Source of the DNA: Octopus bimaculoides
Taxonomy: Eukaryota
DNA length: 63,264 bases
Assembly: GCF_001194135.2 (NCBI RefSeq)
Contig: NC_068997.1
Span: 43,255,851-43,319,114 of the forward strand
Direction of reading: 5' to 3'
Shown here piece after piece: positions 286-63,264 of this stretch. Within the stretch, counting starts at the first letter, position 1. The number at the start of each line of letters is the position of its first letter. The translations under genes were made by a program, and so were the position numbers. Under the pieces are notes generated by a model. It saw nothing but the letters and a program-made list of their open reading frames with translations. It had not been told where the DNA came from and did no database searches.

Positions 286-1377
286 ATGGTACTTATATTG
301 ATAATTAACTGGAATATTGAACATTTATACATCATCGGTTGTAATTCCATTCACATCTCGGGTTGTATAAGAGGAATATTGTCCAAAATACTGTACTTGA
401 TAAATACTTTATTTTATCGACACCATAAATATGGAAGACAAAGTTGTCCCCGATCCAGTGACATAACTCGGGTATATGCCACCCGGATCAGTCCTCGAGT
501 CCCACATCTACTCAGTACAGCATATACATGCCTATGCGACAGACCACCCGTGAGTGCTTCCCCCATAAAAGCGTTATCCACCCTCTCCTTTCCCTAGCTA
601 CGCTTCTGTACCATTCAGCATCTCAGCTCAAGGTCTATATCACAATTTAGAATGTGAAAAGTCATAACTAAAGAACGCGAGGCATTTGTTCGACACACAC
701 GCCAGGTTATGACCTGGAGGGCTTTTTTTTTTTTTGTAAGGAATCACAGCGATAAGGAATTGTGAAATGTTGATGACTGGACCAGCAGTTACACATCTTA
801 ACGATGCAAACAATTTACGTGGTCACTCGCCCCGCTAGAAACAGTAGCCATACCTTCATTAAATAAAACATCACCGTCTTAAAAGGAAAGAAACGATAGG
901 CTTGAGACTGTAAACAAAGTCACTTTAAATGTGGTAAAAAAAAAGGATGAAGTCACGCCTGGAGTGACTTTAATCACAGAGCTACTCTAAGTTTACTCCA
1001 TCGGATTTAACTTGGTGCTAAGCATTCTCATCATTCTGATAAATACGGTCGTTGCTTTTAACTGCAAGTTAGCCCTGATCGAACATACTCGAGGCTACAT
1101 TATTCAATGTATTCTTTCTTTAAAATGGAAGGATGCAGTTTGGGAGTGATTTGGCTGCTATTTCTAATGGATCGAGTGATCATATTTCCTTGACAGATGA
1201 AATGCGATTTGTAAGCAAGGGGAAGTAACACTGGTTTATAGACCGTTGTATCATTTCCCCTGAGCGCGCTCTTTTCATTGTTATTCTACGATCTGACAGA
1301 ATATGCTGCTAAAATGTCATTTACAAACATCAAGTTGTATTTAAGTTAATAAATAGAAAATTTGTAATCAAAACAAT

Positions 1378-1683
1378 ATGCCATTCGGAATGAAGCCTGT
1401 GTGTTCTTCTTGTAAGTCGACGTCTTCGACAATGTGGCGCAAAGGAAGCCAAGGAGAAATCCTTTGTAATTCTTGTGGTGTCAAGTCCTGCAACAAAGAC
1501 AACCCAGACGGTGCCACTGGCAGCACAACCAATTCTACTAAAAACTCTACTTCTCATTCGTCATCTGCAGGACCAGTTCTTAGAAAAAGTTCCCGTATTC
1601 GTCCGACCAAAAATCGGATACAGACAACATCGAAATCGCTGGGGACCAAAGGCAAAAGTCGCCGAAATATTTTTAAGAAAACG
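1378..1683 (+). CDS. GATAD1: GATAD1 coding exon 1 (GATA-type zinc finger)
   Basis: ATG at 1378; ends ...AAA ACG|gtctgt, phase 0. Confidence 0.92.
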
Positions 1684-4600
1684 GTCTGTTTTGTTTTTGC
1701 ATTTGGTTTGCATGATTGCTTCTAATGATGTTGTTATTGTCGTTGTTGTAGATTGTGATGGCTGTGCTATCTTTATTCGTGTTATGATTGCTGTTTAACG
1801 CCGGGAGATTAGCCTTAATCAAGCATACAAGAAGTTGTCGTAGTCATGCTACCTTTTTTCTGTGACATCACTTTCCTAGAACTATATTTATTCAGTGTCC
1901 TTGTTTCTATTAAATACTATCATATGATTTAAAATAGATTTAAATGCTATTTCTAGAAAGTCGAGCTGACAGCGAAGAGACTAATTAGTTTAGAGATTAC
2001 CGCCGTTTGCTTACGGTGATTGCTGTTGCAGATATGTGAAATGTTTATTTGAACAAGAGATAGCCTCTTTCCGGGTTGTTCTTCATTTTCGTGTAATGAT
2101 TGAAGCGCATTATAAATGTTATGTATTGGTTGTTTTAGGTTTACATATTGTTTGAGGAAGAAATAAGTCAACCTCGGAAGCTGCTATCGTTTAGCCCCAC
2201 CTCAATTCTGATCAAACAGACGCACGAGCGAAAGACATTCTAAACGTAGCCATTTTATCATGTTTGTTTTCCAAACACGGTGCATCTAGGATCACACCAT
2301 CTAATATGTTCCCCTTTTTTTTTAAGACAATAGAATGGTATTTGAAAGAGAATCACGAAGCAGCTTTCCTACTATTTTACCAGTGATATAACACTGTATA
2401 ATGTGATATCTATATTCGCCTGATACATTCGTGGTGTGTGTATGGATCTATAATGTACGGTATATGTATATTTGTGTTATTTAGTGTGTATATATATATA
2501 TTTAGGTTTTGAATTGACTAATGTCTTTGATCTTCTGTAATCTTCCAGCATCCGATCAAAGCACCAACAGCTGTATCCACCATTGTGTCAGGGGACAGTG
2601 TTTTCTACAATGTAAGTTGAACCTTTCATTACTTTTAACAGCTAGTCCAAAAACATTCTAGGATTCAACACGATTGAGTATGAAAAGCTGCCTACATTAG
2701 ACAAGACCAAGCCACACAATACTACACACACACACAATTTAGTTTGAGGTGAAAAGTTTGTGGCCCAAACCTTTTCCAGGTCATTCATTGGCTTACTTTT
2801 GATAAACTTATCCTCAATACATAGAAAATGGAGAAGCTGAATGTGGTTTTGGTGGTAGAGTTAGTTGAAAAGTATACCTAGATATTTGCCTCGGTCTACT
2901 CGGCTAACAACAGCTTTAACTTCTTAACTGAGCAGTTTAACTGCATGGAAAGGCTTCATTAACTATTTTTCAGTTGTTCAAAATTTGCAAACCTTTCACA
3001 CCCATGCTAACATGGCAGAACTGGTTATAATAGAATTTGTTTTTTTTTAAATATGTCTTTGTGTCTGTTTGTCACCTCCATGCTGCTTGATAAGTGGTGT
3101 TGGTTTGTTTACATCTCTGTAACTCAGCAGTTCAGCAAAAGAGACCAGTAGAATAAGTACCAGACTTTTAAAATATACATAAGTATCAAGGTTAATTTGT
3201 TTGACTAAAACCCTTCAATGCTGTGCCCCAGCATGGCTGTGGTCCAATGACAATTGAAAGTTGAAAGATCCTCCTTCTATCTCTATATGATGTTAGTATG
3301 TTTAACCCTTTCATTACTGTATTTATTTTGAGATGCTATGTTTCTTTCAATTACTTTAAATATAACAAAAAATTTAGTAAAATAACTTAGTTATCATTCA
3401 GCTTGTGTTAGGAACATAAATTGCGTCTAAGGTTTGGTGGAAGATTTTGATTCAAAACCTACAAAAACAAGACATTTGTATGTAGAGCCAGAGCCGGTTT
3501 CAGCCAGATTGGTATCGAAAGGATTAACATGCTTTCTTTCTTAATTACCTGCAGCTAGTGATTTCACCTTCACCATTGCCTCCTTCTCCTCCACCTGTTT
3601 CTCTTTCTTGGTATGAGTTTAACAGGTTTGCCATACAATATATTGGCCTTCTACTGAATCACATATACTTCATCTAGAAGTCAGACCATCCTGAGATATC
3701 ACTTCACCAAATCTCTCCATGTGTTTTTTTCCTCCGTCATATGTGCATTCCACAGTCAGCTTGCAGCAATTAAACACCTGTGATGGTGCCACGTAAAAAA
3801 CACTGGTGTTGGTGCCCCATAAAAAGCACCCAAAACATTATAAAGTGGCTGGTATTAGGAAGAGTATCCCGTTGTAGATACCAAGTCAAAGCAGACAATG
3901 GAGCCTGGTGCAGCTCCTGACAAACCATCCAACTCATGCCAGCATAGAAAACTGACATTAAATGATGATGTGAGTATAGCAGCAGTCATCTCTCTTCCTG
4001 CATAAATCGTCTGACCTGGCCACTCCCTCAACATTACACATCATTAAGGAAGATGTTACATAGCTTCTTCAAATGCAGTCACTACATGCAAGTCTGCCAC
4101 TCCCATGTGGGCCTGTACAGCCACAGCAGATGCTGCACTGCTATCAGCTGACTCAAATTCTCCAGGCACAAATACATGGTCTTTTGAAACCAACAGATGC
4201 CTGTCTGATATATATGTTATGGGCTTCTACACAGTTTCCAACTTTGATCATAGGTTATCTGGATCAGAGCTGATCTAGAGCTAAACAGCACTGCCAATAT
4301 CCTAGTTATGATATTTTCTATACTTCTGCTACCACATCATCACTATTTAGGTCACTTAAGTAACAGAAACTATCAACACAGATTTCTTTTCCCTACTATG
4401 ACTGTATGGGTGGTGTAGCAAATTTGTGCCAATTGCTGAGAGCCAGCTTAATTCTTTTTGAAATATATATCTAACAAAATGCAAGATGTGGTTTGATTAA
4501 TTTTGAAAATATTCAAGAAATTAAGAGAAATTTAGTTAAATAACTAATTTGTTCATTTTTAAGCTGGTGTTTGTTGCATAACTTAACAAAAACACCACCA

Positions 4601-56790: not shown

Positions 56791-57539
56791 TTTGGAGCAT
56801 ATGTAGTTAATCAGATAACTAATTAGGGACATTGCTATATCGGCAGCTCCATTAGACACACATACATGCCTCTTCTCTCTACACCCGGGAATGGCTGGAT
56901 TCATGCTGTCTTCACTCAACCATTAGTCCTTCTTATAAATCTCTTAGGCCCCATACAATTCACTACACTCTGCCATTTCTCTTCAGAATCTCGTGTGGAT
57001 TCCTCCTGATTATACAATTTGTCCAAGTGGAGGTCTATTAGGTGGCTGCTAGACCCGCTAGAAATAGCAGACAAATCTCGCTCACTATATAAATGAATTA
57101 ACACAAAATACAGGAAAGATATTAGCGAAGAAATTTTTTAAAGATATTTACTTTAGAAAGAGCATCAAACAAAAGAGACTGGTTGAACTTACGATCAACG
57201 GCGTGGGTTTTTCTCTTGGCAGAGTGAAAAGTTTGAGTACCCGAGGTAGGTGCCTCAGTGTTTAAGGGTTAATATGAGTAGAAGTAAGGAAGAAACATCG
57301 GACAATTTAAATGAACACATGTTTAGGGTCAAAAGCAAGTTAAAGAAAGCCAACAATCAATCGTGTGTGCGTGTGTGTGTGAGTGAGAGTGAGAGAGAGA
57401 TGTACATAACATTCTTAGTCTCAAATACATTGTACACTTATAACCAAGGCCGTATTGTCAAATTACGTTTGCAGCTATGGTGATTATATGAAAATTATCG
57501 AACTATTAATGAAGCAGCTAGTTTATTTTATTAGAGATT

Positions 57540-57870
57540 AGCTTAAAAGCTGCACTCGGTGCGGACCTTTATACTGGCTTGCGAGAAGGCTAATAGGGCA
57601 CAAAACGAAAAACAGCTAAATAGCCTGGTCAATAATATGTTTGTAATGACTATATGCCCCGCTGGTGTTTGATCAGACGTTAACGATGGATGAGAATCAA
57701 TTCTCTAATGCAACCATTCTATTGTTGCAGCTACAATTTGAATTCCAGCTATTGGCCAATTTGTCCCGAGGTTCGTATCTCGAGGTAAAATTAACGAAGC
57801 GAATGTCATTTATCTCCCCCTTTATCCCTAACGTCACCTGACAAACGCCAACCAACATGGCGTGCATTTG
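57540..57870. promoter_or_regulatory. Candidate (bidirectional) promoter in a CpG-retaining unique region
   Basis: TATAAA on minus (57573-57568), palindromic ATTGGCCAAT (57751-57760), CRE-like TAACGTCA (57829) and YY1-type CAACATGGCG (57853-57862); motif matches only. Confidence 0.35.
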
Positions 57871-58199
57871 TCAAGCTTTACCTGCTTGAAGTAGTAACCC
57901 AAGTACTTTTGAATCATATATCACCGCTAGATGTCCAAGATGCAAATAAGGGGAAGATATTCAATCCCGAGTTCATTCTCGTTGCAAAAAGGTATAATAC
58001 GTCAATACAGAGCAAATGTAAACAAAATTACAGCGGTTGCAGACAGAATTTCGCCTTTATTATAATAGACATATCAAAAAAATATTACAAAACATTTTAA
58101 TAGTAGCAAATTTGTTTTATTTGAAAACTTACCGAGCTTATAAACCTACTCTTTACATCGAACTGTGGGCTATATGTTGAGTACTCTATCGTATTTGTG

Positions 58200-58395
58200 A
58201 AAAGCGGTAAGTAGCAGAATGGTTAGCAAACCGATGGCATTTCATCCACTTTTGCAAACTTAGTTTAAATTCCACCGAGGTCGATGGTTCCCTTCATCAT
58301 TTTCTTGTTGATAAAATAAGTGCCAGTCAAGGTTTCGGGTCAATATGACCAACTACTCACTTCACCAAATCTCAAGCCTTGTTCCTACATTAAAA
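58200..58395 (+). mobile_element. Old family B SINE inside duplicated unit 1 (paralogous copy at 59828-60023)
   Basis: aagcggtaagtagcagaatggttagc...gaggtcgatgg...aaataagtgccagtc. Confidence 0.7.
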
Positions 58396-58544
58396 AGGAA
58401 TATTTCATGTACGATTTTTATTTACCCATCCTTACTATCATATCCCCTTACAGTTACACGATTGTTTACAATGAAATGTTCTATGTGAATATATCGAGAA
58501 TGAAGTATCGTTTCTGGTTGGAACCTCCAGGTTTCCTGTCCTGA

Positions 58545-58706
58545 AATTGCCTGGCTAAGAGTTCATACGGTTGGAGGAACAATACCGGACACCTTGTAAC
58601 TATGTTATGGTACCAGCCAGCATGTTACAGAGGGTGTTTAAGAACTCAAAGGTGCATAAAACGGCAGACCCACACAAGTGTGTCCCCTACTTTGTTTCCT
58701 CAAAAC
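58545..58706 (+). CDS. YDYIG family copy 1, truncated by an assembly gap
   Basis: Identical by eye to 60173-60334 (offset 1628). Confidence 0.4.
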
Positions 58707-59429
58707 NNNNNNNNNNNNNNNNNNNNNNNNNNNNNNNNNNNNNNNNNNNNNNNNNNNNNNNNNNNNNNNNNNNNNNNNNNNNNNNNNNNNNNNNNNNNNN
58801 NNNNNNNNNNNNNNNNNNNNNNNNNNNNNNNNNNNNNNNNNNNNNNNNNNNNNNNNNNNNNNNNNNNNNNNNNNNNNNNNNNNNNNNNNNNNNNNNNNNN
58901 NNNNNNNNNNNNNNNNNNNNNNNNNNNNNNNNNNNNNNNNNNNNNNNNNNNNNNNNNNNNNNNNNNNNNNNNNNNNNNNNNNNNNNNNNNNNNNNNNNNN
59001 NNNNNNNNNNNNNNNNNNNNNNNNNNNNNNNNNNNNNNNNNNNNNNNNNNNNNNNNNNNNNNNNNNNNNNNNNNNNNNNNNNNNNNNNNNNNNNNNNNNN
59101 NNNNNNNNNNNNNNNNNNNNNNNNNNNNNNNNNNNNNNNNNNNNNNNNNNNNNNNNNNNNNNNNNNNNNNNNNNNNNNNNNNNNNNNNNNNNNNNNNNNN
59201 NNNNNNNNNNNNNNNNNNNNNNNNNNNNNNNNNNNNNNNNNNNNNNNNNNNNNNNNNNNNNNNNNNNNNNNNNNNNNNNNNNNNNNNNNNNNNNNNNNNN
59301 NNNNNNNNNNNNNNNNNNNNNNNNNNNNNNNNNNNNNNNNNNNNNNNNNNNNNGAGGGGACAATACAAAAACATGTGGTGACACATAACACGAAAAAAAT
59401 AAAATGAAAATAAAATTTTAAATATGGTA

Positions 59430-59490
59430 ACATGAATGATACATGAAAATGATACATGAAAATGATACATGAAAATGATACAGGAAAATG
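59430..59490. repeat. 13-bp tandem repeat (acatgaaaatgat) x~4.5
   Basis: Read directly from the sequence. Confidence 0.9.
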
Positions 59491-60172
59491 TGCTGCTTGT
59501 CCCACCTCAAGCAGCAACACTTACTTCCTTCTGAATCCCGAGTCCTTCAAATTTTTCTCTCAGTTCCTCATATCCTACTTTTACCGGTATCCTTTTCGAG
59601 TTCGCATCAGTTTTCCAATACTTATAACCTTTTTTTAATGTTTTGCAATCACTTCCTTCTGGCTCTGAGACACCAGCACACACATGTGCCAACAACAAAT
59701 ATCAAAAAAATATTACCAAACATTTTAATAGTAACAAATTTGTTTTATTTGAAAACTTACCGAGTTTATAAACCTACTCTTTACATCGAACTGTGGGCTA
59801 TGTGTTGAGTACTATTTCGTATTCGTGAAAAGCGGTAAGTATCAGAATGCTTAGCAAGCCGATGGCATTTCGTCCACTTTTGCAAACTTAGTTCAAATTT
59901 CACCAAGGTCGATGGTTCCTTTGATCATTTTGTTGCTGATAAAATAAGTGCCAGTCAAGGTTTCGGGTCAATATGACCAACTACTCACTCCACAAAATCT
60001 CAAGCCTTGTTCCTACATTAAAAAGGAATATTTCATGTACGATTTTCATTTACCCATCCTTACTATCATATCCCCTTACGGTTACACGATTGTTTACAAT
60101 GAAATGTTCTATGTGAATATATCGAGAATGAAGTATCGTTTCTGGTTGGAACCTCCAGGTTTCCTGTCCTGA

Positions 60173-60406
60173 AATTGCCTGGCTAAGAGTTCATACGGTT
60201 GGAGGAACAATACCGGACACCTTGTAACTATGTTATGGTACCAGCCAGCATGTTACAGAGGGTGTTTAAGAACTCAAAGGTGCATAAAACGGCAGACCCA
60301 CACAAGTGTGTCCCCTACTTTGTTTCCTCAAAACCTCCAGAAAAATGGTAAAATTTTCTACAAATACCCCTCAGGTGTTGTAGACTACGATTATATCGGA
60401 ATATAA
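60173..60406 (+). CDS. Uncharacterised ORF, YDYIG family copy 2 (NCLAKSSYGWRNNTGHLVTMLWYQPACYRGCLRTQRCIKRQTHTSVSPTLFPQNLQKNGKIFYKYPSGVVDYDYIGI*)
   Basis: 77 open codons after an in-frame TGA (60170-60172). The ATG at 60230 gives 58 aa, apparently too short for the ORF track. Homologous to the inverted ORF at 60548-60772. Confidence 0.45.
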   Translation, partial: NCLAKSSYGWRNNTGHLVTMLWYQPACYRGCLRTQRCIKRQTHTSVSPTLFPQNLQKNGKIFYKYPSGVVDYDYIGI

Positions 60407-60547
60407 TATGAAAAAGAAAAATTTGCGAAAGTACACACATATATACTGACACACATAACATATATATCCACAAAATGGAACTTGAAATTTCGAAAAAATA
60501 TTCGAATGTGTGTCAGAATATAAGTGTGCGCGACTTCTTTTTACACG

Positions 60548-60940
60548 TTAATTTCCGATATAGTCGTAATGTACGCTATCTGAGAGATATTTGTGGAATA
60601 TTTCCTTAAAAAGTATCCATTTTTTCTGAAAGTTATGAGCAAACAATTGTGCGGAGGGCACACCTGTGAAGGTTTGCTCAAAATATCCCCACAAACACCA
60701 AAAACAAGGTGAAGATGACTCTGACTTCACTCTAGTCTTCAGGTGTCCGGGTGCGTCCCCCGGCGCACACATTCCCTAGCCTCTAATCACCGTGAAAGGT
60801 TGAAAGAGACTGAATATTATTTGAAAGGAAAGCCTTGGAGGAATCGTTTCCGATATTGTGACGTCATAATGACCATATGAAGACATAAAGAAATCTCTGG
60901 AGTAAACGAGAAATTCTTGAATGAATCTCTTACATAGACT
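60548..60940 (-). CDS. Uncharacterised reading frame, YDYIG family copy 3, with one internal TAG at 60776-60778
   Basis: tag|SLCKRFIQEFLVYSRDFFMSSYGHYDVTISETIPPRLSFQIIFSLFQPFTVIRG*GMCAPGDAPGHLKT...LFAHNFQKKWILFKEIFHKYLSDSVHYDYIGN*; aligns with copy 2 using codon-sized gaps. Exon, gene or pseudogene status is unresolved. Confidence 0.45.
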
Positions 60941-61488
60941 CTACACACGTACGCACACAAGACCACACACACATGTACACAAATATTTATAAACATACTG
61001 TGTGCGTTCACATCGGTGTGTATGTGTCTGTATATGTGTGTGTGTGTGCGTGCGTGTTTGCATGTTTGCATACACTTTAAAAGGTGTGATAGGTGACACA
61101 ACACATTATATAAAGGTTGGGACATAGTAGATAAGTTACACAATGCACTCCTACGTTCGACGTTGTTTGACAATAAACTCTCATAACCTCAGATAAGCTA
61201 GTGTACTGAGTTTGAGCCATCGTTTAAAAAAAAAAAGAATACAATAGACGTTACCGATATTTATGCTTTATATAACGTATACGTAAGCCGATATTGCGTA
61301 AGCCGGTAGGCCCTATGACACGACACGGTGCAGCCAACTCACTTCGTCAACATCATTAGCAAAAATAGGTCGACTAATTGAAACACGTGTAGATTATATA
61401 AATACGACACACCATTTACGTTTTCTGTCAACCCACTTCTTTTACTTATGCGTGTGTGAACACACACAGACATACACACACAAACATA

Positions 61489-61519
<31 letters not shown>

Positions 61520-62315
61520 NNNNNNNNNNTATATATATATATATATATATATATATACGCACACACACGGACATGCATATATTTGTGTGTGTGTGTGTAA
61601 TACATCAAGTACAAGACATCACCAACGAGTGAAAAATACAGGACAAAATACTAAAAAATACACGATACGAACAGGACGTCACAAACAAGTGAAAAGTCCG
61701 TAAACACATAATGAGGGACAAATACGGGACAAATTACCAAAAGAAGTTTAAGCCCTCCTCAGATGTTGACTGTTAATCACTACCTATTTCGAGCTTTCAA
61801 CGACAAGATAGGAAACCTTCATAAAACAGCAGCATCTAGACATTTTAAAAATATATAATTTGTGGGGAGTTAGAGCTTCGTACGAACAAACAACGACAGA
61901 GTGGACGTACAGAGTAAACAATCGACGAAGACAAACATTAAGTGCCGTTAGGCCAAGACACATTGTAAAGGGTAATGCCTGGGAGAAATTTTGAAAGGGT
62001 ATAGATAAATAGAAGAGAAGAAACAGTAGAAGTGAAAGAAAAAAAAAGAGAGAAAAAATGTCGAGAGGCGAGGAAAATGACGTCTATCTAAGTGAACGTC
62101 GCATCCAGAAAAGACATAGGTGAGAAAAATGACCGTCGTTGATTATTCGTTCGAAGCTCTAACTCTCCACAAACTTTATATTTTTAAAATGTAAATAATT
62201 TTAAAAGGAGAAAAAGCCTCAACGAAGTTTTTTTGCGAAAAATTGCATAAACCTGTCCTGATCAAGAGGCCTATCTATCGGGGAAGGTATGGTCTGACAT
62301 GCCATAAACAAAAAT

Positions 62316-62565
62316 TTATATAAGACATTCGGAATCTCCTGCAACTCTTCTGGACGATCTCCTTGTTTTTAAGTTGGTGAATGCTGCCATAATCCTTGCC
62401 TTCAGTTCATCTTTGGTGTTACAAGGAGTTTTGTTGGACTTGCACTCCACCCTCTTGACCCAGGGCAGCACTACCTCCTCCAGGCACTTGATGTAGGCCT
62501 CCATGTTGAGTGTTGGGCCGTATGGGAAAATGAATGGAGGCATAAGGTCACCGTTACTAGTGATC
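62316..62565 (-). mobile_element. Tc1/mariner-superfamily transposase fragment, internally deleted
   Basis: GDLMPPFIF...YIKCLEEVVLPWVKRV joined directly to CNTKDELKARIMAAFTNL; the catalytic middle is missing. Confidence 0.75.
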
Positions 62566-62665
62566 NNNNNNNNNNNNNNNNNNNNNNNNNNNNNNNNNNN
62601 NNNNNNNNNNNNNNNNNNNNNNNNNNNNNNNNNNNNNNNNNNNNNNNNNNNNNNNNNNNNNNNNN

Positions 62666-62760
62666 GTTTCCGATATTGTGACGTCATAATGACCATATGA
62701 AGACATAAAGAAATCGCTGGAGTAAACGAGAAATTCTTGAATGAATTTCACACATAGACG
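62666..62760 (-). CDS. YDYIG family copy 4 (5' part only, truncated by a gap)
   Basis: cag|RLCVKFIQEFLVYSSDFFMSSYGHYDVTISE; near-identical to 60846-60940, with AG at the same position. Confidence 0.38.
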
Positions 62761-62887
62761 CTGCACGCGCACGCATACAATAGCACACACACGTGTGCAC
62801 GAAGAAACATTTATATAGTGTATGCATTCACATTAATGTGTGTGTGTGTGTGCATACCCCTCAGTCTACCAACATATACAGATACAA

Positions 62888-63200
62888 AGGCGTTGAGCTG
62901 GCAGAATTTTTACCTCGCCGGATTTAATGCTTAGCTGCATTTCGTCCGTCTTCATGTTCTGAGTTCAAATTCCTCCGAGGTCGTTTTTGCCTTTCATCCT
63001 TTCGGGGTCGATAAAATAAGTTGAGCTCTGGGATCTATGTAACAGACTTAGCCCCTCCCCCGAAATTATTGGCTTTGTGCCAATATTTGAAATCAATATA
63101 TACAGACCTGGAGGCAGAGAGCTGGCAGGATGGTTAGCATGCCGAGCATTTCTTTCGTCTTTACTTTTTTGTCTTTCATCCGTTCACAGTCAATAAAATA
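62888..63200 (+). mobile_element. Two family B SINEs (one full, one deleted)
   Basis: aaggcgttgagctggcagaa... and ggcagagagctggcaggatggttagc... Confidence 0.82.
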
Positions 63201-63264
63201 AGTTAATTTTTAATCACCCACAAGGGGCCGACATAGAGGGGACAATACAAAAACATGTGGTGAC

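Follow-up and report, generated by a model that had tools for sequence, protein, structure and literature searches.

Two open reading frames ending in YDYIG face each other in a 63,264-nt stretch of the Octopus bimaculoides genome (the window), and they raise the question of whether this locus holds a family of small genes or a repeat. An earlier note on this DNA had read them as duplicated units of about 130 codons, belonging either to a lineage-specific tandem gene cluster or to a decaying unknown element. Our overall reading, which we consider probable, is that the facing frames are the arms of a non-coding palindromic repeat lying within a second repeat. As for the narrower conclusion that the YDYIG units are a non-coding dispersed repeat and not a gene family, we hold it with high confidence. 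According to the explanation that we prefer, an interspersed repeat of the foldback/MITE-like kind, about 390 bp long (60290-60679), would carry both frames on its arms, and the dispersed repeat enclosing it, for which we use our own label E (60130-60289 plus 60684-60815), would provide the N-terminal halves of both frames. Both frames would be stop-free by chance in this one copy.

Facing frames and the hairpin

The plus-strand frame lies at 60173..60409 (78 codons and a stop, with an ATG at 60230), and the minus-strand frame at 60548..60775 (75 codons and a stop, with 74 aa counted from the ATG at 60772); on our reading, both are accidental open frames. The former ends in VVDYDYIGI (stop 60407-60409) and the latter in VHYDYIGN (stop 60548-60550), with 141 nt separating their last coding bases. 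These ends, this distance, the length of 58 aa for the plus ORF counted from its own ATG, and the common motifs GHL.T, C..CL, QT.T.V and YDYIG had been given in the earlier note and were confirmed. LF..N.QK is a further common motif, and the two peptides show 39% amino-acid identity. On the other hand, the supposed units of about 130 codons are not open: an in-frame TGA at 60170-60172 on the plus strand and an in-frame TAG at 60778-60776 on the minus strand leave real stop-free stretches of 78 codons (60173-60406) and 75 codons (60551-60775). What is left of the proposed element is a palindrome nested in another repeat, instead of a 130-codon coding unit. By direct reading of the sequence, an AG dinucleotide stands right behind each of the two upstream in-frame stops.

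The robust similarity between the two sides is confined to 60291-60456 versus 60679-60502, where the inverted repeat has 78% identity (z = 19 against shuffles). The left hairpin arm (60291..60456, plus strand) includes the final ~38 codons of the plus frame, its stop and ~47 nt past the stop, and the right hairpin arm (60502..60679, minus strand) the final ~43 codons of the minus frame, its stop and ~46 nt past the stop. Between them is a 45-nt loop (60457-60501), inside which lies the conserved apex AACTTGAAATTTCGA (60479..60493). The palindromic element as a whole measures 390 nt (60290..60679) and has AAAA on either side (60286-60289 and 60680-60683). Its inverted repeat extends to the ends of the insert (CGGCAGACC... 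versus GAGCAAACC...), giving the terminal inverted repeats that are required of a MITE or other non-autonomous TIR element. The 394 nt of 60286-60679 fold into a single long hairpin with a DNA dG of -73.6 kcal/mol (z -10.4), and none of 100 shuffles folded as well. Within the arms, a repeat search detected no tandem subrepeats.

The DNA identity, put at roughly 70% in the earlier note, turned out to be uneven: it is 66% over the whole frame, rises to 77% for the final ~32 codons and reaches 81% over the 50 nt past the stop. Toward the outside, 60130-60310 shows 59% identity with its opposite counterpart (z = 2.6), and the similarity farther out is not significant (z = -0.6). The codon-sized gaps reported before were found for two indels in the well-aligned tail (3 and 12 nt); elsewhere the gaps are of 1-8 nt and depend on the aligner. 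Since each arm is an inverted copy of the other at the DNA level, matching frames on their opposite strands give similar peptides, and scans for genes should take into account that inverted DNA repeats automatically produce seemingly "paralogous" peptides from their two strands. Where a genome is AT-rich and full of repeats, a pair of 75-codon open frames can persist by chance. That two frames of 75-78 codons stay open in homologous register, with the two clear indels of the tail in multiples of 3, has by rough estimate a chance of a few percent; this speaks against our reading, though the locus was selected for that very property.

We also considered that the ~390-nt hairpin family could act as long hairpin RNA, for example in host introns or UTRs, and give rise to putative endo-siRNA or miRNA-like small RNAs, or that a subset of copies could encode a YDYIG micropeptide, but we regard this as barely credible. 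If the small-RNA reading were true, the conserved apex and the kept arms would mean selection on the fold, and the family would be an addition to the large cephalopod-specific small-RNA repertoire; a search for small-RNA libraries that contain the hairpin gave none.

The host repeat and the class of the element

E consists of a high-copy left part (60130..60289, plus strand), which includes the first ~39 codons of the plus frame and the in-frame TGA, and a right part (60684..60815, plus strand), which includes the first ~31 codons of the minus frame and the in-frame TAG (60776-60778). Copy number was judged from the raw reads of genomic runs (about 1.9 Gb each), in which unique places have a depth of at most 1. 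The left part has a raw read depth of 67-170, the right part one of 55-140 that drops at about 60815, and the hairpin arm modules reach 40-160 in three raw-read runs; from these depths, we put E and the arm modules at roughly 100-250 copies dispersed in the genome, and the hairpin at about a hundred or more. Exact 60-mers of the left E part occur at a depth of 495-4000, where single-copy sequence has 11-18. Upstream of 58506, the equivalent of 60134, another copy of this part diverges. The alternative offered by the earlier note, a decaying unknown element, holds in its second half; decay is not obvious, considering that exact 60-mers of the outer part of the element stand at about 40-120 times single-copy depth.

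In short-form copies of E, 60289 is joined straight to 60684, as seen in 26, 27 and 14 reads of the runs X21, X22 and X23 and in contigs. This direct junction in other E copies marks the hairpin as a separate unit of 390 nt with AAAA on each side. Accordingly, filled and empty related sites both exist, and there are multiple dispersed copies with different flanks, as is expected of a MITE; the loose read ends past 60402-60415 are diverse, with an agreement of about 0.5. We moderately favor a specific model of insertion and mobility, in which the hairpin would have inserted into E, duplicating a 4-bp AAAA target, and would have spread as a non-autonomous DNA element, with a putative transposase acting in trans. 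The AAAA on both sides of the insert was observed at the single junction compared with short-form E, and a microhomology-mediated deletion fits it equally. The observed junction fits neither the TA and TTAA target duplications of Tc1/mariner and piggyBac nor the ends of Helitrons, which have 5' TC and 3' CTRR and insert between A and T, and these possibilities were rejected for that reason.

The same junction could have arisen in the opposite direction, from an ancestral foldback palindrome of ~690 bp made of E arms and inner arms, with short E produced by central deletions through palindrome instability. In a large share of E copies, 60290 is followed by a diverged form of the insert, so that the long form could be ancestral. 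The end points 60289 and 60684 are moreover symmetric in the arm alignment and have AAAA microhomology, the short E form makes a weak hairpin (z = -2.4), and the two E parts share a 10-nt perfect complement (CCGGACACCT / AGGTGTCCGG). Nevertheless, the E parts are just 59% alike (z = 2.6), and the inner palindrome and single arms occur in other contigs with flanks that show no similarity to E, and we therefore consider the ancestral long palindrome rather doubtful.

The arm module, of ~125 nt, is indeed present in public contigs without any E similarity. It is single in L001 and L007 and forms convergent pairs in L006 and L010 (77%). In L010, an unrelated contig, the convergent arms lie at 3423-3608 and 3616-3784 with the same apex (GAAACTTGAAATTTCGA) at the center; the module also occurs there as a direct tandem (copies a and b, 168 nt apart), and the flanks of the pair show no obvious target-site duplication. 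These contigs bear on a further explanation, by which a SINE- or retroposon-like unit of ~340 nt (E part plus tail) inserted twice independently, tail to tail, and the palindrome is coincidental. The region is packed with SINEs, close relatives of each arm exist separately at 88-93% identity or above, and the single modules of L001 and L007 would suit such a unit. However, the convergent layout recurs with the same apex in L010, a convergent pair recurs in L006, and the short-form junction is symmetric about the palindrome. The outer arm parts are also barely alike (59%, z = 2.6). A tRNA-like head was found neither by ARAGORN, which detected no tRNA over 57400-63264, nor by Rfam, which gave over the same range only sub-threshold, low-complexity miRNA matches in microsatellites; a poly(A) or simple-repeat tail is likewise absent. 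Two independent insertions are thus quite unlikely.

Turning back to the nested palindrome that we prefer, the element is an unclassified foldback/MITE-like repeat. Among MITEs, those whose terminal inverted repeats are very long or near full-length, such as zebrafish Angel, fold into a single hairpin. The present element resembles them in its size of ~390 bp, almost wholly inverted repeat with a short loop, in its tens to hundreds of dispersed copies that nest in other repeats, and in the short direct repeats around the insert that show up by comparison with a paralogous empty site. Its 390 nt without coding capacity are well within the small size (under ~800 bp) of MITEs. In contrast to hairpin MITEs, its arms are only 78% identical, and its 4-bp AAAA flank, seen at one junction, could be matched to no hallmark target duplication of a named superfamily. 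Classical foldback elements, such as Drosophila FB, have kilobase-scale arms with arrays of short subrepeats. The likeness to FB consists in the long inverted arms with hardly any or no sequence between them and in the direct tandem that the arm module can form (L010), but the arms here are ~170 nt long and have no internal repetition such as the tandem subrepeats of FB. Like octopus tRNA-derived SINEs, the element is short, abundant and dispersed, and is carried as a passenger in transcripts of related species; it differs from them in being palindromic and in lacking a tRNA-like head and an A-rich or simple-repeat tail, and it is not a SINE by these features. SINEs make up about 11.6% of the O. 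vulgaris genome, and repeats account for 43-66% of octopus genomes, hundreds of their families being unclassified (PMC13282606), so the element is no biological surprise. To cephalopod genomics it adds a further palindromic repeat without a class, lying within another repeat.

Coding signals, transcripts and protein matches

On the one hand, the dN/dS between the two arms was 0.48 (Nei-Gojobori, protein-guided alignment, 66 codons), a value that is not significant, has dS saturated at 0.95 and is subject to ORF-ascertainment bias. We judged it unreliable, and the variant spectra of the family were therefore used instead. On the other hand, substitutions across the family copies look neutral and without codon periodicity. 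The variable sites over genomic copies are distributed over codon positions 1:2:3 as 22:23:24 (p = 0.96), and the family variants as 7:14:12 in the plus frame and 15:9:12 in the minus frame. The changes listed comprise 19 synonymous, 52 non-synonymous and 3 stop-creating ones: the Trp codon at 60200-60202 is TAG in 25% and TGA in 19% of reads, and a Ser is changed to a stop at 60723 in 18% of reads. Among nine module copies, third-position conservation is 0.55 versus 0.63 and 0.66, a difference that is not significant and carries ORF-ascertainment bias; all three module copies found otherwise than through an ORF contain in-frame stops. Purifying selection on the frame and conservation ending at the ORF limits, as in a protein-coding family, were thus not found. 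Instead, two positions inside the ORFs, 60289/60290 and 60683/60684, are repeat borders and copy-number steps.

In three RNA-seq runs, each sampled at about 6%, the YDYIG locus had 0-5 reads at a likeness of at least 97% and no splice joints, and the reads that map at lower stringency bear variants of other copies. Five peptides, from both arms and a transposase-like ORF, gave no match in Pfam, and a word-indexed protein search with the plus peptide gave none either. An exhaustive HMMER profile search of 1.84 billion proteins found no homologue with an annotation or a domain. Five of its 8 matches are short unannotated ORFs (51-158 aa) over other copies of the repeat, and the matched ORFs continue past YDYIG into unrelated sequence. 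Two others, bacterial TPR and WG-repeat proteins, are spurious, and P0002 (174 aa, no name, with ENA and JGI/IMG records) is an internally repetitive ORF and probably spurious. The minus-strand ORF 59507-59698, which lies beneath exact contigs from the RNA runs, had no Pfam match and no homologue.

These results can be weighed against real lineage-specific small protein-coding genes or terminal exons ending in YDYIG, in a local cluster with pseudogenes. Such genes would account for the 75-78-codon frames in homologous register with 39% amino-acid identity, for the codon-sized indels of the tail and for the AG dinucleotides just past the upstream stops; moreover, UniRef A0A0L8I0S6, an "uncharacterized protein" of 51 aa from O. 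bimaculoides, overlaps another copy of the left E part. Against them, the similarity is undiminished beyond the stop codons, variation is uniform by codon position with stop-creating variants in 18-25% of reads, module copies without ORF ascertainment have stops, and repeat borders and copy-number steps cut the ORFs. Locus-specific transcription or splicing was absent from the three RNA-seq runs, and an annotated or domain-bearing homologue from the 1.84 billion proteins. We give this explanation almost no credence, and the tandem gene cluster proposed earlier is not supported in view of the codon-neutral variation, the in-frame stops in many copies, the lack of locus transcripts in three runs and the 100-250 dispersed copies, which are largely the findings that the earlier note itself had named as refuting it. 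The frames do resemble lineage-specific families of small secreted peptides of molluscs, being short, clustered and Cys/Tyr-containing with a conserved C-terminal motif, but differ from them in the absence of frame selection, the many stopped copies, the conservation past the stop, the lack of locus transcripts in three runs and the lack of annotated homologues. Description of the repeat can serve the curation of repeat libraries and the removal of false gene models, such as the 51-aa model of 2015 that overlaps an E copy.

Local duplications and gaps

The apparent local cluster exists because a repeat-rich block is segmentally duplicated (58071-58706 corresponds to 59699-60334, and 62666-62851 to 60846-61031, and the end of the stretch repeats sequence from 59354 onward). 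The first duplicate (58071..58706, plus strand) is direct, is truncated by a gap and has 96.5% identity over 636 nt, comprising a degenerate SINE, the left E part and 45 nt from the start of the hairpin arm. The further copy formerly placed at 58545-58706 is within it and is 100% identical to 60173-60334, and thus is not independent. The other proposed copy, 62666-62760, matches 60846-60940, a flank outside the robust repeat; it belongs to a duplicate (62666..62851, minus strand, 84%) of 60846-61031, which lies beside the right E part.

Considering the fourteen N gaps in the window, the cluster could be an assembly artefact, such as a collapsed or duplicated repeat consensus near gaps. The 22 differences between the 636-nt copies are all in the first 382 nt, and the last 254 nt, beside the gap, have none, as such an artefact might produce. 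However, the diverged part of each copy is covered by distinct exact contigs of single-copy depth from independent runs of different years. Exact contigs at roughly single-copy depth also cover 60500-60704, a 187-nt contig covers 60272-60458, and the palindrome layout is independently present in L010. An artefact is accordingly very unlikely for the cluster. All ORFs that cross N are artefacts.

As for the gaps themselves, the two sides of 58707-59353 are not continuous with each other. A contig past 58706 goes on like 60335-60364, but the second copy has the identical sequence at this place and could be its source, and by contig extension the sequence left of 59354 resembles 63218-63235. No bridging contig was obtained for the gap 62566-62665, and the gap 61520-61529 is within an (AT)n microsatellite. 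The mariner-like remnant at 62316-62565 has no similarity to the hairpin arms. SINEs crowd the region around the YDYIG frames, and several true SINE copies adjoin them.

Two facing frames and the inverted repeat

We found two open frames facing each other in the window. This eukaryotic DNA is AT-rich (GC about 36%), is interrupted by 14 N gaps and holds numerous SINE copies and microsatellites. By frame reading, the + strand frame (60173-60406, stop at 60407-60409) ends in ...VVDYDYIGI, and the - strand frame (60775 down to 60551, stop at 60550-60548) ends in ...VHYDYIGN. Every motif listed in the earlier note is present. The duplicated unit of ~130 codons that it proposed is closed in both arms, with an in-frame TGA at 60170-60172 (+) and an in-frame TAG at 60778-60776 (-) upstream. 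The N-terminal halves of the frames, containing GHL.T and C..CL, lie within E, a host repeat (60130-60289 and 60684-60815). The C-terminal halves, containing QT.T.V, LF..N.QK and YDYIG, lie within the hairpin, a 390-nt palindromic insert in E (60290-60679), and the boundaries between insert and E cut inside both "ORFs". The best reading of the YDYIG locus is a palindromic repeat of foldback or MITE-like kind, nested in a second repeat; both are unclassified.

The + arm was compared with the reverse complement of the - arm by gapped alignment, scored against shuffles. The inner segment (about 60291/60311-60456 against 60679/60654-60502) showed 78% identity (z 19), the following 180 nt outward showed 59% (z 2.6), and the distal ~100 nt showed no meaningful identity (z -0.6). 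Identity was 77% over the last 32 codons and 81% over the 50 nt beyond the stop codons, and similarity reached to ~20 nt from the common centre. Since the similarity continues past the stops and nearly to this centre, the arms behave as a DNA inverted repeat and not as two genes. As DNA, 60286-60679 (394 nt) folds into a single long hairpin with a dG of -73.6 kcal/mol, against -32.9 ± 3.9 for shuffles (z -10.4).

Nesting, dispersal and classification

Reads matching up to 60289 and then jumping to 60684 onwards (TATCCCCACAAAC...) numbered 26, 27 and 14 in three runs, and several contigs carry the same join. These direct joins indicate that E also occurs as a 292-nt form lacking the 390-nt centre. 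The insert and the inverted repeat have the same outer limits.

We considered whether two chance insertions could have produced the palindrome. Related contigs were fetched via short ORFs over other copies, matched by exhaustive protein search. They contain the arm module, a ~125-nt piece of the hairpin arm, at 72-78% identity and have no similarity to E. The module is single in contigs L001 and L007, in direct tandem in L010 (copies a and b, 168 nt apart), and in convergent inverted pairs in L006 and in L010 (3423-3608 / 3616-3784, 77%). The centre of the L010 pair is GAAACTTGAAATTTCGA, and its apex is identical to window positions 60479-60493. The recurring tail-to-tail layout and the conserved apex indicate that the palindrome itself is the element, and not two chance insertions.

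Copy number was taken from the raw reads of three genomic runs (~1.9 Gb each), all from the same species, in which a unique place has a depth of at most 1. At a likeness of at least 85-93%, the depth of E was 67-170 over 60130-60310 and 55-140 over 60684-60815, and that of the arm modules (60351-60415 and 60585-60620) was 40-160. Exact 60-mers of 58509-58660 had a depth of 495-4000 in assembled contigs of 2015-2025 runs, compared with single-copy contig depths of 11-18 and 45-64 in two of the assembled runs (X1 and X2, respectively). From these depths, the E and arm-module families have ~100-250 copies, as an order of magnitude for an assumed genome of a few gigabases, and this assumption agrees with the read depth at unique sites. 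At least four other organisms also have runs in which 31-mers from the repeat region occur. Many reads of the three genomic runs mapped to 60150-60820 pass, at no fixed position, into one and the same perfect palindrome, AGGTTCGTCCATCGATCGATGGACGAACCT. Its most likely source is the preparation of the libraries ("GENOMIC OTHER", of proximity-ligation type), as a bridge linker or ligation junction, and not the genome.

The hairpin corresponds to a MITE in being small and non-coding, in having inverted termini, in its copy number and in the existence of related empty sites. At the one junction seen, the insert has AAAA on both sides, which may be a target duplication or, equally, the microhomology of a deletion. 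The repeat does not have the features of a SINE. Repeats are reported to make up 43-66% of octopus genomes, among them hundreds of SINE, TIR and MITE families that are unclassified (PMC13282606), so an unrecognised family is to be expected.

Coding potential and transcription

A coding gene family disagreed with the data in all four criteria tested. Variant spectra of genomic copies were mapped to each arm. Among the sites listed, variants in the + arm fell on codon positions 1:2:3 as 7:14:12, with 9 synonymous, 25 non-synonymous and 2 stop-creating changes; those in the - arm fell as 15:9:12, with 10, 27 and 1, respectively. Both arms together gave 22:23:24 (chi-square p = 0.96), with 19 synonymous, 52 non-synonymous and 3 stop-creating changes. 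The Trp codon at 60200-60202 is TAG in 25% and TGA in 19% of reads, and at 60723 Ser is changed to a stop in 18%. The upstream stops were absent among the variable sites listed (TGA 60170-60172 at a 25% threshold; TAG 60776-60778 at an 8% threshold), and accordingly they appear to be common to most copies.

The three copies found by adjacency only, and not via an ORF (L006b, L010b and L010c), each have 2 stops within ~30 codons. In ORF-derived copies, reading continues beyond "YDYIG" into unrelated residues, indicating that the stop position is not conserved. The arm versus arm dN/dS was 0.48, from a protein-guided alignment with saturated dS, and mismatches in the DNA alignment of the arms fell on codon positions as 29:20:25, which is not significant. 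Pfam, a word-indexed search and HMMER over 1.84 billion proteins gave no annotated or domain-bearing relatives. One HMMER match, a 51-aa "uncharacterized protein" from O. bimaculoides, overlaps a different copy of E in its left part.

Over 59940-60940, three RNA-seq runs (each ~6% sampled, 1.7-1.9 Gb) gave 5, 4 and 0 reads at a likeness of at least 97%, with no splice joints among them. At 88% likeness, a few dozen RNA reads of both strands were seen, carrying variants of other copies. Family members ride as passengers in contigs from RNA runs of this species and another. We consider it very improbable that the hairpin gives rise to putative small RNAs or a putative micropeptide.

Local duplication, gaps and neighbouring repeats

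The earlier note had counted 58545-58706 and 62666-62760 as further copies and had proposed a tandem gene cluster or a decaying unknown element. The former is merely the end of a 636-nt direct duplicate (58071-58706 against 59699-60334, 96.5%) left of the gap at 58707-59353, and the latter is duplicated flank DNA. Each diverged duplicate is covered by distinct contigs of single-copy depth, so the local array is a genuine segmental duplication, of a block rich in repeats, rather than an array of genes. All 22 differences between the 636-nt duplicates fall within the first 382 nt (5.8%); the remaining 254 nt, the high-copy part, are identical, which likely reflects consensus-like assembly beside the gap or gene conversion.

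In an independent DNA run, one contig extends past 58706 with letters equal to 60335-60364; since the two copies are identical over their last 254 nt, it may derive from the second one. On the other side of the gap, contigs put ...CAAGGGGCCGACATAGA, matching 63218-63235, ahead of 59354, and one contig of run X14 connects 62992-63235 to 59354-59464 with zero mismatches. These matches indicate that the two sides of the gap come from separate parts of a larger block that was duplicated. Given this X14 join, and since the last 29 nt of the window equal 59354-59382, the block spanning roughly 59354-63235 seems to form a tandem repeat. The gap probably conceals a SINE-bearing segment resembling 62852-63235. 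N-spanning ORFs of 236-278 aa are artefacts.

For the gap at 62566-62665, no bridging contig was found; its right flank is an 84% duplicate of 60846-61031, and its left flank is a very high-copy transposase-like remnant. This ORF fragment (62316-62565, -; ITSNGDLMPPFIFPYGPTLNMEAYIKCLEEVVLPWV...KTPCNTKDELKARIMAAFTNL) had no Pfam match, and we take it to resemble the C-terminal region of a transposase of mariner/Tc1 type, internally deleted. Its contig word depth was 14,000-190,000 against 11-18 for single copy, indicating a very high-copy element. Nearby, a 58-nt inverted-repeat pair (61840-61897 / 62135-62192; 90% complementary, arms 237 nt apart) has a word depth of about 1,500-2,000, ~100x single copy, and resembles a MITE in its own right, ~350 bp long.

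The segment 59354-59698 is low-copy and is covered exactly by contigs of the RNA-labelled X14 and by ~10-20 RNA-seq reads of both strands. An ORF of 63 aa within it (59507-59698, -; …SEPEGSDCKTLKKGYKYWKTDANSKRIPVKVGYEELREKFEGLGIQKE…) has a protein-like composition and gave no Pfam match or homologue; the segment could represent a transcript that is untranslated or lineage-specific. Immediately right of the gap, 59437-59490 is a tandem array of about 4 copies of the 13-nt unit ATGATACATGAAA.

SINE-like repeat copies with a B-box-like GAGTTCAAATTCC lie at 58180-58411, 59810-60040, 62887-63102 and 63094-63210, with ~10 more in 1-57000. ARAGORN called no tRNA in them. They are extremely abundant (word depth up to 1.8-5.7 million), and RNA runs too are rich in them, from both strands. 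Microsatellites of (GT)n/(CA)n and (AT)n occupy 60940-61060, 61440-61600 and 62770-62855, and the gap at 61520-61529 sits within an (AT)n tract. Rfam miRNA-family matches in the microsatellites are palindromic low-complexity sequence (25-45 bits against gathering thresholds of 75-101) and not real miRNAs. Upstream of the YDYIG locus, 57596-57987 is another dispersed repeat, with a word depth of about 2,000-3,000 (~150-200x single copy).
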